64,000 nt of DNA, from the NCBI RefSeq assembly GCF_052425735.1, contig NC_135762.1:372001-436000 (forward strand), written 5' to 3'. The position numbers were made by a program, and so were the translations under genes. The notes below the pieces were generated by a model, which was given only the letters and a program-made list of their open reading frames with translations, was not told the origin of the DNA and did no database searches. Below, piece by piece: positions 55,101-61,100 of this stretch; position 1 is the stretch's first letter, and every line of letters starts with the position of its first letter. The DNA is from Oculina patagonica (Eukaryota).

Positions 55101-58100
55101 TGGCGACTTCATCATAGCGCAACTCGCTTGTTCGTTTCCATTTTTGGCCAATCACAAGCCAAGAAAGTTTGGAATGAAGAGCCACAAAACACTAGATTAC
55201 ACTTGCTGTTCTTTTTTACTTCGTTAGCGCTCAAAAAGGGCAGTAACTCGATTTGTTTCGCTTTTGAAATTGCTTGATATTCTTTAACATTCACAGCAAT
55301 GATGAACATTTTAATTTTAACTGAGGACCTTAGTTGTCTTATGAGACTTTTAACCAATGGATCCTTCTGAGCTGTGAATAAAAGTGACGTGATGTGACGT
55401 GACGTGCCTAGGTTACGTGACGTGACGTGCCTTGTGTGCCTTGCGTTAAGCGGTGTAATATAAATCAGTGTTATTTGTTTGCTAGGTACCGGTATCGTGA
55501 CGTCAGTTCCTTCAGATGCCCCGGATGATTACGCGGCCCTCAGAGACGTGAAGAACAAAGCGGTCAGTCATTAAAATGCGCATGAGTGTGTCAGCGTTGG
55601 TTTTGAATGGGTTCTCGCGTGTTTCAAGTAAAGGCCCTGAACATTACACTACTGGGAAACCAATGTTTACATGCAGTACACTAACTTATATCGCAAGAAT
55701 TTGTTTTGGAAATATCCCCAATATAAACAATTATGTAACTCAATTTGTGTTACTAGAGGATCCCGTGATTCCCAGTCCCACATGTACCCTTCGCTTTTTT
55801 TTCACACATGTTTGTTTGCCGCGTTAAAATACGTGGAGCTATTTTTTTTTTTTTATCAACTTGGTGCGCAAAGAAAACGGCAAAAGTGCTACACCATACT
55901 ATTCCTACAAAATTCAAAAAAATTCTACAGGGTTGATGGTGATAATCTTGCTACAACGAAGGTTTAATTACAATCGTCCATGCGACGTTACTATTCGCAA
56001 CATTTTAATAGTATCGCCTCAACAACATGAAATGTAAACTTTGCCTTTACTTTTTAACCTCAGGCATTCAGACAAAAGTATGGTATCACGGACGAGATGG
56101 TTCTTCCTTACGAACCTATTCCCATCATCCGGGTCCCTGAATATGGGGATCTCTGCGCAGTCAAGGCCTGTGATGACCTCAAGATAAAGAGCCAAAACGA
56201 CAAGGATCAACTAGCAGAAGCTAAGGAACTCGTCTACAAAAAGGGCTTTTATGAGGGAATGATGATCATCGGAGAATTTGCGGGACAGAAAGTTCAGGAC
56301 GTCAAGAAACTTGTGCAGAAAAAAATGACGGACAGTGTAAGTTTATTTTCGGGCTTTTGAAATATACTTGTTTGTCGCCTTTTGATACAGCCAAAACAAT
56401 TGGTTTTGTTAGTCCTTGCCTAAAGTAAGCAGCTGAAACGAGGAGGGGTTGCAAAAGTCACGTGCAGCGCACCCCAACCAATCACAACAAAGATGTTATG
56501 CTGTGACGCTGCACGAGAATGGAACGGATTACCAAGGGAAATGAGAGAATTAAACACTCTATCTAAGTTTAAGACACACATTTTTAAGCATTTTATGGAA
56601 CAGGACCGTATAAATCATATATGTACTGTAAATTAGGTTCAATTTTCTTTTTTTGTTTTCTTTTTTTTGTTTTTTTGTTATTTTTTTTGTTTTTTTTTTT
56701 GTTTGCTTGCTGCTCTTTGCTCTTCTCTTCTTTTTAAATGCTTGAATTTGATACATAAACTCCAGAATATTTGTATTTTTTTTTTAAATGTATTTTTAAT
56801 GTAAATTTTTAATATGTATATATATAAATCTTACTTAATGCTGATCGCCAGTTTATACCAGTGATCTAATGATCACTGATTGGCCCTTCAGGATAAATAA
56901 AGTTTTTATTATTTTATTATTTTTAGCCAATCAGGTGCAAGACCAACGCCAGTTCTCCCGCGCTTGTCGCTGGTGGCATGCGCTTGCTTCGAGTTCTGAT
57001 CGGCCCGGATAACAAACATTTTTTGCGACTATAATGTATGGCTCGGCTCAGTAGGAGTAATGCCGTTTTATTAAGAGTTCAGCGCTAGCCTTAGAAAGGT
57101 GATTGGGAGTTATTGATTGTTCTTCCTTTTTTCCGGGGTCTCATGATATTTGTAGGGCGAAGCACGGATTTACATGGAGCCAGAGAGAAAGGTAATTTCA
57201 CGTTCCGCGGATGAGTGCGTCGTTGCTCTGTGTGATCAGTGGTAAGTCAGCGAGAACAGTGATTGTTTTAGTCTCTTGTTGATGTGCAGCCTGCACTGAA
57301 TTGATTGGAACTGTTTTATGAAGTTTGAAGAAGTAGGCTAAGACACACTTTTTCACAATTTGTTCTTAGGTTTCTGGATTACGGCGATGAGCCATGGAAA
57401 AATGAGGCGCGAGAATCACTGAAAAGTTTAAACACGTAAGTCACTCTTTAGTTTTTCCTAAGCCTTTGCATGACGCCTTTTTGTTGATTTCCCATTTTTC
57501 GGCCAATCACAAGCCCAGCCAGTCCGGGAGAAAGAGCTACTAAATTGCACGTGCGTTTGTTTGCTCTCTGACTGGCTCAAAAAGTATTTAATATCTTGAG
57601 CGAACAACAATAAAATAGCTAGACATGTTTAAAAATTCACAGCAATGATGAACATTTTAATTTTAACTGAGGACCTTTCTTGTCTTATGAGACGTTTAAC
57701 CAATGGATCCTTCTGAGCTGTGAATAAAAGTCAGGCGATGCTACTTGGAACTTCCCACTGTTGCGGTTCTGTCAGTGCTAGGTTTATTGAAGTGTCTTGG
57801 TCACGAAACAATCACACAGCTAGCAAACTCTGAAAACAGAGATGTTTACGGGAGGACATTGTAACAATTATGTAGGATCTATTATCTAGCGTGGCTTTAA
57901 AACCTGACGTGATGTAATAATAATGATCCAAATAACAGTTTGTGACACTTCTCGTTGTCAACTCAGCTGTGTAATTTTATTTTAAAGATACGCTGAGGAA
58001 ACCAGGCGGAACTTTGAAGCCACATTAGACTGGATTCATGAGCATGCTTGCTCCAGGTCTTACGGTCTTGGTGAGTTTCTGAGTTTATAAAAAAATGGCT

Positions 58101-61100
58101 ACTCAATTACTATCAGCTATGATGAAGGTAAATTTGTTGTTATGAAGACTTGTTCTTGTGACAGATCTCACCAATGGATCCTTCTGAGCTGACAACGTTC
58201 GCATTTGTGTTTGTTAAAAATCTGCATGTGCAGTATTTGATCCTTTTTTGCACCATTTCCAACCGAAGTTGCTGCTCGCTCAACTGCTCGCTTTGATTGC
58301 TTCAATCAAACCAGGCATATTCTTTTTTCACCCAGTCAGAAGCAAATCAGAACCAATCGGCCAAGGCATCGGCCAATTGTGACTTGATTTTGGCTCGTTT
58401 TCCTGCGCTTTTAGAACTGATTGCATATTTTGCTGCACATGGCACTGGTTACATGTTTTCCCGCGCTTGACACTGGTTACATGTTTTCCCGTGCTTGGCA
58501 CTGGTTACATGTTTTCCTGCGCTTGGCACTGGTTACATGTTTTCCCGCGCTTGACACAGTCTCCATGATTTTGCTTCGAGTTCTGATTGGTTCATCGCTT
58601 AATGTAATGATCGGTGCCATTAGTTTGATTTTGGTTTTAAACTTGTAGAAAAAGACAAGTTAAAGTGTATTTCATCCGAATAATCTCCTGTGAAGGTCAT
58701 CATTTTTACTGTCAAACTTCTAATTCCCAGAATTCAGTTACTGCTGAAAGATAAATGACACACCGGTATTTTGATTTCGATATCTTGGCTCGCAGCGAAA
58801 TTTTGTTGCCAATATAAACGAAAAGAATAAATCATCGTTTTAAGTTACTGTATAAATGAGAAACAGTGAACCTTTACAAGTAGACAGTGGCCACTCGTGG
58901 CAGAGAGCAGCAGAAAGATAAAGAGCGAAGTGAAAGACCTTTGAATAAGTCACACTTCTGGATGGAATTTTAATTTTATTCCGTTAAGTCTCGAAGAAAA
59001 TGTGGAATACAACACTGTACATCTAAGATGTGGTATATTTTAAGTCTCCTACTTATTTGTTGAGAGAATGCATCTACTCCGTCTTTCAACATATTCAAGT
59101 GCAAACAACGCAAAAATGTCGTTGTCGAGACGAGATGTCAAGTATGGCTTGAGCTGAACCATATGAAAATGGTCGATAATGTGTTTGGAGCAAGTGTGCC
59201 ATGTTTTGAGGTTATCCGTTTCTTTCTGTCGCTTGATTTCGCCTTCACTTACGATGTAAAAAAATTAACCACTTCATCTACGAGTCTTTGGAGTTCAAAT
59301 TTCAGCGAAATGTTTTCAGCTCAAAAATCTTATTCAAGCAGCTATCCAACCATTTCTCAAGTTTGATACACAATAATTAACAGGATTACACGCTCTATAG
59401 TCTAGGAAATAATTGGATGATATCGAGATAATAAAAAATTCAAGGAGTGACTGCCCTTGGAATTTTTATCATCTAAATATTTACCACACAAAAATTAGGG
59501 ATAATTACGGTGGCCCACAAAGATATTCATTACACACACGCAAGTGAAGCATCCGAAAATTAGATTTCGACCAAATAAAGAATGTTCAATGCATTTTGAA
59601 AGGTTCCTTGAAATCAATATTGGTTAAAATCATGTTTCGAAATGCTCCACCGTCAGTTAAATACTTGACTGTGGAAATCTGGCCGTAACTGATTACTTAA
59701 TCCGTATCGTTATCATCTTTGTCGTTTAAGTTCAAGAACAATCACTAATTCTTCCGTAAAGTTGACTTCTCGCTTATGCCTTGGTCAGGATCTTGAACAA
59801 AACACCCTCATGTCCGAAATGTGCTAGATTGGTCCAAGTTTTACAGTGTATCTCTGAAACAACTGGTCGGAGCTTTTTGGTATTTAAAGTACTAAGCCGA
59901 AAACAAAATTAGAAATTACCAAATTTGGGAAAAATCCAATCACACGAATTGGCGGGATAAGATATTTTGCGGCGGTTTTAGCAGAGCGTGATGCGAGCGT
60001 TTAGCCCGAAATACGCGCGCGCGTGTTGGCCACGCGTGTCTCCTGCTGGCGTCGCGTTCGGGTGATAACCTCTAATGTTGTTATGTTTTCTTTTTTTTTC
60101 ATGTTATCTCGACAGGAACTCGTCTTCCATGGGATGAGCAATATTTAATCGAGTCGCTGTCTGATTCCACTATCTACAATGCTTACTACACAGTGGCACA
60201 CCTGCTGCAGGAAGGAGCCTTCGACGGGTCCGTTTGTGGGCCCCTAGGAATAAGGTACTGTGTCATACAGTAGTTTAGGGTACTTTAATGTTATCACCAT
60301 GGAAACATGGTGTTCAGGACCGTAAAACCACTCGAAAGCATTAGATTTCCCTAGGAAACGCTCCAGACATCACTTTTAAATTTTTCCCATTTTGTAAATG
60401 TAAAAACAGCGGGAAAACCAGTATTGGTCTTGTAACGCATGCTGAGTTGGACCGCCCCATTCATCTCCAAATCGAAACTAAGTATCCAGCCTAAAAAATT
60501 GCACGTTGACTGATGACATTAATGGCTGAAAGACGAAAAAAGATCCACTCTGTAGGATCAACAGTAAAGATTTTAGAATGTTGATAAGCAAAGACGACCT
60601 AAATTACAAAGAAGCGTTCGTCAAAGAGGGTCGAGGTTTTTTTTTTTACTTTCCATGTTTCCATAATGGTAAACTGCGTTCATTCCTCTTCTTGACCTCA
60701 GATCTAACGCGCAAGCAGAAATTTGATATTATGCAAATCATTGCCTTAAAAACGAAGAGAGAATTCTCTATCGGTATAGAAAAACTCAGAGGATTAAAAA
60801 CTGAAAAGGGAGCGACTGCTTGCAATCTTCATTTCTGGCGATGTACCAAAGTATTCTTAACGTTGTAAATTTACTTTTGACTGGTTCATTTGGCTTGCCA
60901 CTCTGGTTCAAGACTTCTTGTTTTTTCGCTGCTTATTTGTTATCGTTTATTTGAAAGACTGTCTTCTTCACAGCAAAATAAACCTGTACAAAACATCTGG
61001 TCTCACACGGTTTTTATTGTACGATAAGCGCGCAAATCCGGCAAAACGTATGACTGAGAGATTAAAGAGAATCATCAACTAGGGGATATTTTCTTATAGT

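Follow-up and report, generated by a model that had tools for sequence, protein, structure and literature searches.

Three intronic box C/D snoRNA genes in a LARS1 gene of the coral Oculina patagonica and their putative 18S rRNA target

Three related elements resembling box C/D snoRNAs lie close together on a contig of Oculina patagonica, raising the questions of whether they are genuine snoRNA genes, which rRNA nucleotide they would guide and how a single host gene came to carry three of them. The window analysed is a stretch of 64,000 nt (GCF_052425735.1, NC_135762.1, positions 372,001-436,000), and all coordinates given here are those of the window on its forward strand. The reading favoured here, and held to be highly probable, is that the elements are three paralogous snoRNAs of the SNORD62/snR41/snoR41 lineage situated in LARS1 introns and acting as canonical guides for 18S A544. 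The snoRNA family itself is already known, with only the host gene and the copy history being new; the accepted view of snoRNA action is unchanged, and the value of the locus lies in annotation and evolution rather than in surprise. To our knowledge, cnidarian snoRNAs have barely been annotated.

Anatomy and family assignment of the three copies

The three copies were located at the positions proposed by the first-pass annotation, with the following extents, boxes and guides:

55289-55379, forward strand: snoRNA copy 1 (C box 55299-55305, D box 55367-55370)
55353-55366, forward strand: D-box guide of copy 1
57635-57725, forward strand: snoRNA copy 2 (C box 57645-57651, D box 57713-57716)
57699-57712, forward strand: D-box guide of copy 2
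58113-58192, forward strand: snoRNA copy 3 (C box 58119-58125, D box 58184-58187)
58170-58183, forward strand: D-box guide of copy 3

All three are box C/D snoRNA genes: a C box (RUGAUGA) stands towards the 5' end and a D box (CUGA) towards the 3' end, both boxes (AUGAUGA and CUGA) being perfect in every copy. A terminal stem of 9 bp was found for copies 1 and 2 and of 5-6 bp for copy 3, and the guide upstream of the D box is identical throughout. As had been noted from the sequence, two copies are nearly identical (copies 1 and 2 agree at 88 of 91 bases, 97% identity), and the third keeps boxes, stem and guide at an overall identity to the others of ~65%. The divergence of copy 3 is internal: its final 22 nt, comprising guide, D box and stem, are 100% identical to those of copies 1 and 2, against ~55% identity elsewhere, and its terminal stem is preserved via one compensatory change from A-U to U-A.

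A search of the 529-Mb genome with the 18-mer formed by guide and D box, allowing at most one mismatch, returned three sites, namely the three copies, all inside 2.9 kb, with the reversed control giving 0 and 1. The window, 12 kb of an orthologous contig (L018) and the rest of the genome yielded no further copies. Comparison with Rfam, which had been suggested as a check on the annotation, identified plant snoR41 (RF00205), a member of the SNORD62 clan (CL00068), as the best family, with full-length alignments scoring 36.1 bits for copy 1, 35.0 for copy 2 and 33.2 for copy 3 (E = 0.003-0.014 over 20 kb). Every copy falls below the curated gathering threshold of 40 bits. Searched genome-wide, the snoR41 model returned the three copies as its top three matches, and its consensus contains the identical guide and D box string. 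None of the copies was among the genome-wide matches of the vertebrate SNORD62 model (RF00153) at E <= 10, and any match to the SNORD62 clan in the window scan scored lower than snoR41. Given the uniqueness of the 18-mer, the top ranks with snoR41 and the placement in three separate introns, the three-copy set is beyond chance.

The host gene and the placement of the copies within introns

The host was assigned exon by exon, by reference. The exon at 56064-56336 matches residues 423-512 of human LARS1 (E about 1e-36), which identifies the host, by sequence similarity, as the gene for cytoplasmic leucyl-tRNA synthetase and bears out the earlier proposal. The exons surrounding the copies were as follows:

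55486..55562, forward strand: LARS1 exon downstream of copy 1 (spliced contigs; tblastn to orthologous contigs)
56064..56336, forward strand: LARS1 exon, editing-domain region (human LARS1 match; spliced contigs)
57156..57241, forward strand: LARS1 exon (spliced contigs; orthologous contigs)
57370..57435, forward strand: LARS1 exon upstream of the copy-2 intron (spliced contigs; orthologous contigs)
57988..58070, forward strand: LARS1 exon between the copy-2 and copy-3 introns (spliced contigs; orthologous contigs)

Spliced RNA contigs with GT..AG joints at about 55562|56064, 56336|57156, 57241|57370 and 57435|57988 showed that LARS1 is transcribed and that its splice joints exactly bracket the snoRNA introns, confirming that the three copies occupy three separate introns. 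Both mRNA-type contig sets (n=2) covered exons only, with nothing over the snoRNAs, and the small-RNA runs (n=2) were almost empty. By canonical expectation, the snoRNAs would be coupled to the transcription of LARS1, each RNA being freed from a spliced or debranched LARS1 intron, trimmed at its ends to the terminal stem and assembled with the box C/D proteins, fibrillarin included. Guide RNAs of this class accumulate as stable molecules of about 70-100 nt, bound by fibrillarin, NOP56, NOP58 and SNU13. LARS1 joins the translation-related snoRNA host genes. A precedent for the type of host is provided by human SNORA84, which is also intronic in a tRNA synthetase gene (IARS) but is a single-copy orphan H/ACA snoRNA, unrelated to the coral copies in sequence and function.

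The copy-2 intron spans 57436-57987 (552 nt), while copy 3 lies in an intron of roughly 2 kb, 42 nt past its 5' splice site, the following exon beginning near 60116. The distance to the 3' splice site is 106 nt for copy 1, 262 nt for copy 2 and about 1920 nt for copy 3. Vertebrate intronic C/D snoRNAs typically lie roughly 70-80 nt from the 3' splice site; as the distances found here are greater, processing may be independent of splicing position. Processing of copy 3 may be inefficient, given its distance from the 3' splice site.

The predicted target site in 18S rRNA

The 18S gene of the same genome was located using a short universal 18S motif and delimited with cmscan (contig L007, positions 339-2087, minus strand, 1473 bits). 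The guide can form 12 contiguous Watson-Crick pairs with 18S positions 540-552, plus a G-U pair at guide position 1. Counting by the D+5 rule, the fifth position is 18S A544, and the pairing is the sole one of its kind, that is at least 10 nt of rRNA complementarity immediately upstream of a D or D' box with a nucleotide selected at the fifth position, across 18S, 5.8S and the 5' 800 nt of 28S. The next-best site of the guide is limited to 9 pairs, of which 4 are G-U. A544 is the predicted 2'-O-methylation target of all three copies, as had been stated in the annotation, where the selected adenosine was equated with human Am590 and yeast Am541. The equivalent positions, plant Am545, human Am590 and yeast Am541, are methylated (PMC8583080, PMC11542601), and a guide for this site is a feature of the SNORD62 clan that the copies share. 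In the proposed mechanism, the 13-nt guide directly upstream of the D box would pair with 18S 540-552 and direct methylation of the ribose of A544, providing a secure, deeply conserved guide-target pair.

Each copy would probably act as a single guide, since its D' region is unconserved, and a search of 18S, 5.8S and the 5'-most 800 nt of 28S gave no convincing complement to it. With the remaining 28S absent from the assembly, a 28S target for the D' region may lie in that portion.

The closest resemblance is to plant snoR41 (AtsnoR41Y), whose guide and D box are identical to those of the coral, whose guide likewise lies on the D-box side and whose target is the same (Arabidopsis 18S Am545, equivalent to coral A544). 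For Arabidopsis At41Y a second target, 25S Um1067, is listed as well, but the D' region of the coral copies is unrelated in sequence. Gene organisation differs as well, the coral copies being intronic in LARS1 whereas plant snoRNAs are mostly clustered. Yeast snR41, which guides the equivalent site (18S Am541), is an independently transcribed gene.

Vertebrate SNORD62A/B (U62) and its chicken counterpart GGgCD14, both listed as functional homologues of snR41 and snoR41Y, share with the coral copies both the target (human 18S Am590, chicken A551) and the status of intronic box C/D snoRNAs. However, the chicken U62A/B homologue carries its 12-nt antisense element on the 5' (D') side, whereas the coral guide abuts the D box, no guide for the A590 site being present upstream of the D' box in the coral copies. 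The chicken host is LOC417177, not LARS1, so that the earlier statement of a D' box guide and a different host for human SNORD62 is supported. The host of human SNORD62 is PRRC2B. SNORD62A/B is additionally assigned to LSU U4468. The placement of the guide at the D box is common to corals and plants, whereas the vertebrate guide lies at the D' box.

As the RNAs are known here from DNA sequence, the elements could in principle be conserved intronic sequences that serve a different purpose, for instance in the regulation of LARS1 splicing, and only look like snoRNAs. This would require a coincidence of C/D grammar, stem covariation, a guide identical to that of snoR41 at the D+5 position and uniqueness in the genome. 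Moreover, the same guide and D box design was found in plant- and alga-like contigs whose flanks have no match to LARS1 exons, and such an explanation is considered most improbable.

Copy history and the conserved upstream module

Orthologous LARS1 exons were identified on seven coral-like metagenome contigs, with copies 1 and 2 found intact in the same two introns. Copy 1 has orthologues on L017, L018, L020 and L025, and copy 2 on L017, L026, L022 and L033, with one on L018 truncated by the contig end. The terminal stems on L018 are preserved through G-U changes. The remainder of each intron could not be aligned among taxa, except for a block of ~120 nt upstream of copies 1 and 2. Duplication is old, being common to other coral taxa, and the three-copy layout is older than the split from several of them.

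For the close match between copies 1 and 2, gene conversion is the best explanation and fits better than recent duplication. Copy 2 shares only 80-84% identity with its positional orthologues, for exons of about 89% identity between those taxa, and both window copies share one mosaic at 14 of 14 diagnostic columns, L025 being a second mosaic. The high identity between the two is limited to about 55283-55382. A maximum-likelihood tree of 11 copies was unresolved owing to the shortness of the sequences, and identity and diagnostic columns were therefore used instead. Copies 1 and 2 would thus have been homogenised by gene conversion in the lineage of O. patagonica.

The position of copy 3 is occupied in L026, L022 and L033 by a decayed relic lacking C box, D box, guide and stem, and model R1 scored copy 3 at 76 bits against 15-17 bits for these orthologues. 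Among the genomes sampled, copy 3 is intact only in that of O. patagonica; it thus appears to have decayed elsewhere and been kept intact here. The annotation had taken its pattern of conservation as that expected from selection on function.

A possible, though rather unlikely, alternative is that only copies 1 and 2 are functional and that copy 3 is a non-functional relic whose 3' end was overwritten by a recent, short gene-conversion tract coming from copy 1 or 2. The three other contigs hold a clearly dead copy with disabling changes in common, gene conversion between LARS1 introns is evident, and the identical block of copy 3 is a single contiguous stretch of 22 nt; copy 3 also has the shortest stem, and its separation from the splice sites is 42 nt on the 5' side and about 1.9 kb on the 3' side. 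However, its perfect C box is separated from the identical 3' block by ~50 nt, beyond the reach of one short tract, and is mutated in all three of the copy-3 orthologues. Its stem is maintained by the compensatory change and not by identity. Exon distances, by which O. patagonica looks like an outgroup to the three relic contigs, make a single ancestral loss simpler. In the favoured reading, the paralogue dynamics within this one gene comprise an old triplication, conversion across introns 2.3 kb apart and the loss of a copy in certain lineages.

The conserved block upstream of copies 1 and 2 was delimited as follows:

55128..55245, no strand assigned: conserved intronic module upstream of copy 1 (CCAAT box 55146-55160)
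57478..57590, no strand assigned: the same module upstream of copy 2 (CCAAT box 57501-57515)

The CCAAT motif was found only twice in the window, and the copy-2 module additionally contains a CACGTG core together with an inverted CCAAT that has decayed. The module was duplicated together with the snoRNA. A transposon moving the snoRNA was considered for the copy-1 flank and rejected, the flank matching only itself in the genome. Nor was there support for a structured RNA, for instance an H/ACA snoRNA: Rfam gave no match, and the consensus fold consisted only of the 7-bp inverted CCAAT without covariation.

The module may leave room for independent transcription of copies 1 and 2. An ancestral duplication unit consisting of the snoRNA and a ~120-nt CCAAT/E-box/inverted-CCAAT module that serves as an intronic promoter or enhancer was considered, and is judged improbable. 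If it were so, the coral snoRNAs of this family would be partly independent units nested in LARS1; alternatively, the module would tune LARS1 itself. In this reading gene conversion would hold the paralogues uniform. It is likewise judged improbable that the snoRNAs derive not, or not only, from the LARS1 pre-mRNA but from intronic promoters of their own formed by the CCAAT/CACGTG/inverted-CCAAT module. Such an origin would agree with the conservation of the module upstream of both copies in all taxa sampled, where other intron sequence is unalignable, with its lack of RNA structure or covariation, which fits a DNA-level element, with its not being a genome-wide repeat, and with the distance of the snoRNAs from the 3' splice sites. 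Against it, intronic C/D snoRNAs of animals are generally excised from their host intron, the RNA contigs showed no transcript starts, copy 3 lacks an upstream module and both window modules carry the inverted CCAAT in decayed form. Module and snoRNA are also variably spaced, about 45-80 nt apart in O. patagonica but about 350-400 nt apart in L026 and L022.

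Box C/D snoRNA copies and their predicted 18S target

Three box C/D snoRNA copies were confirmed on the plus strand of the sequence at the positions proposed by the first-pass annotation, in introns of the gene for cytoplasmic leucyl-tRNA synthetase (LARS1).

Positions of the snoRNA copies (from sequence) and LARS1 exons (from spliced contigs)
55289-55379, plus strand, snoRNA copy 1
55486-55562, LARS1 exon
56064-56336, LARS1 exon
57156-57241, LARS1 exon
57370-57435, LARS1 exon
57635-57725, plus strand, snoRNA copy 2
57988-58070, LARS1 exon
58113-58192, plus strand, snoRNA copy 3
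start near 60116, LARS1 exon following the copy-3 intron

Copies 1 and 2 differ at 3 of 91 bases, while copy 3 has an overall identity of about 65% to them and has perfect C (AUGAUGA) and D (CUGA) boxes and a terminal stem in common with them, together with an identical 22-nt block (guide, D box and stem), matching the earlier description of two near-identical copies and a third keeping stem, boxes and guide. Folding gave the expected terminal stems (9 bp for copies 1 and 2, 5-6 bp for copy 3), with a compensatory change at one position (A-U in copies 1 and 2, U-A in copy 3).

A relaxed Rfam scan returned full-length matches to snoR41 (RF00205, of clan CL00068, which also includes SNORD62) at 36.1, 35.0 and 33.2 bits, with all three scores just below the 40-bit cut-off. 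The snoR41 consensus contains the same guide-plus-D-box string as the three copies, and the vertebrate SNORD62 model did not recover them. The anticipated target was present in the genome's own 18S (minus strand of rDNA stretch L007, 339-2087, 1473 bits), the guide pairing with 18S positions 540-552 through 12 contiguous Watson-Crick pairs and a G-U at position 1. A544 then faces the fifth guide nucleotide counted back from the D box, as had been predicted for the equivalent of human Am590 and yeast Am541, with which Arabidopsis Am545 (guide AtsnoR41Y) is tabulated as equivalent (PMC8583080; PMC11542601). No second guide site of comparable quality was found in the available rRNA. The copies show no conservation in their D' regions, and a search of 18S, 5.8S and the initial 800 nt of 28S (the assembly lacks the remainder) identified no complement to these regions. 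The copies belong to a well-known pan-eukaryotic guide family, with A544 as the predicted target, and the earlier reading of them is supported. What is new here is the LARS1 host, a D-box arrangement held in common with plants and not with vertebrates, and the history of the copies.

The three copies were the only occurrences of the guide and D box 18-mer (allowing at most one mismatch) in the 529-Mb assembly, with the reversed control giving 0 and 1. They also ranked on top of a genome-wide search with the snoR41 model, and a genome BLAST with copy 1 as query matched copies 1 and 2 only.

The chicken U62A/B homologue addresses the same site, but through its 5' (D'-box) element and from a host gene other than LARS1 (PMC2653536), which confirms the earlier statement that vertebrates differ in both the guide position and the host. 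A metagenome scan for contigs in which guide and D box come after a C box yielded 21, and in 14 of them the homologues are alga- or plant-like, their D-box guide being the same and their flanks different. Plant-like or other eukaryotic homologues with this guide (L030 6001-6095, L023 314-404, L029 216-306) possess a second conserved D' guide (AAAAA-UACCUA-UUUU type) that is missing from the coral copies, which suggests that the RNA originally carried two guides and that one was lost in the coral lineage.

The LARS1 host and its introns

The host was assigned exon by exon. The peptide of exon 56064-56336 resembles residues 423-512 of human cytoplasmic leucine-tRNA ligase (E about 1e-36), upholding LARS1 as host. 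Spliced contigs with GT..AG joints were found in two public runs with the same organism label, which shows that LARS1 is transcribed and places the snoRNAs in three separate introns, the latter as previously claimed. The 3' splice site is 106 nt downstream of copy 1; in the 552-nt intron of copy 2, the snoRNA is separated from the 5' splice site by 199 nt and from the 3' splice site by 262 nt; and copy 3 has the 5' splice site 42 nt upstream and the next exon about 1.9 kb downstream. The snoRNAs appeared as RNA in none of the runs: contigs of mRNA type at the locus covered only exons and one transposon-like stretch, and two size-fractionated RNA runs were nearly empty. Human SNORA84, located within IARS, is a precedent for a snoRNA with an aminoacyl-tRNA synthetase gene as host (PMC1636440).

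Two further intronic elements were observed. A tRNA-like sequence at 54195-54270 (minus strand; ARAGORN tRNA-Thr, anticodon TGT; Rfam tRNA 41.9 bits, two anticodon-stem pairs mismatched) could be a real tRNA gene or the head of a tRNA-derived SINE. The stretch 56440-57010 has high contig depth in RNA-type runs and many loose ends into other sequences, and it contains long T runs as well as an inverted CCAATCA/TGATTGG pair; most probably a repeat or transposon that is expressed has inserted into the intron here.

History of the three copies

The other seven contigs (L017, L018, L020, L022, L025, L026 and L033) are coral-like and carry LARS1 exons with 84-96% DNA identity to the window. The snoRNA lies in the intron orthologous to that of copy 1 in L017, L018, L020 and L025, and in the intron orthologous to that of copy 2 in L017, L026, L022 and L033, as well as in L018, where it is cut by the contig end. 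The introns are unalignable except for the snoRNA and one upstream block; the snoRNAs are accordingly under purifying selection, and the two-intron arrangement is older than the divergence of the sampled taxa.

At the place orthologous to copy 3, just after the same exon, L026, L022 and L033 hold a recognisable dead copy with a UAAUGA C box, a broken guide, no D box and no stem, several disabling changes being common to these relics. Under R1, a covariance model built here, they score 15-17 bits versus 76 for copy 3 of the window, itself in the training set. These relics show the triplication to be old; among the sampled lineages, copy 3 has survived only in that of the window. Copy 3 has kept every functional part, even the C box at a distance from the identical 3' block, whereas its interior has drifted, which favours continued selection, although copy 3 may have been rescued by a short gene conversion.

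Copies 1 and 2 of the window are 97% identical, compared with 78% for the two intron copies of L017. Copy 2 of the window shows 80-84% identity to its positional orthologues and 90% to the copy-1 orthologue of L017. At 14 columns separating the orthologue groups, both window copies share one mosaic (8 states of one type, 6 of the other), and L025 presents another. The high identity is limited to about 55283-55382 and drops to background levels elsewhere, the upstream module excepted. Paralogues that predate speciation should not exceed orthologues in likeness, and the best reading is gene conversion (or one copy replacing the other), not a recent duplication.

Conserved upstream module and other features

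The upstream block is a module of roughly 120 nt that precedes copies 1 and 2 by about 45-150 nt and is kept in both introns and in every coral-like taxon sampled.

Positions of the conserved module (window and coral-like contigs)
55128-55245, upstream of copy 1
57478-57590, upstream of copy 2
L026 428-545, L022 493-610 and L018 11972-12090, coral-like contigs
L020 590-712 and L025 262-385, minus strand, coral-like contigs

Its motifs are a CCAAT box, an E-box-like CACGTG core (copy-2 intron) and an inverted CCAAT box. No conserved RNA fold and no Rfam match were found for it, and it is not repeated across the genome. The module was evidently duplicated along with the snoRNA and may be a transcription-factor platform, serving as snoRNA promoter or LARS1 enhancer. 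A tight promoter role is, however, argued against by a module-snoRNA distance that varies about tenfold among taxa and by copy 3, which is without a module.

Directly 3' of copy 1, a GTGAC pentamer array (55384-55429, about 9.6 units) repeats GACGTG cores. In L017, L018 and L020 the corresponding position has a single or double GACGTGAC-type motif, so a short CRE/G-box-like site seems conserved there and expanded in the window.

Among the rDNA stretches of this genome, L006 (G000:C1:27762984-27766006) holds a second 18S-like copy, diverged from that of L007 (G000:C3:181878-184900) by small deletions and substitutions near the 530 region, with the snoRNA target kept; it may be a pseudogene or variant rDNA. 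The unit in L008 (G000:C3:172000-181999) has complete 18S and 5.8S, but its 28S stops after roughly 800 nt (model positions 24-664), and a universal central 28S motif occurs nowhere in the assembly, which means that the assembled rDNA is truncated or collapsed. A histone 3' UTR stem-loop (27204-27249, plus strand, 36.2 bits, above the Rfam threshold) indicates a replication-dependent histone gene upstream in the window.
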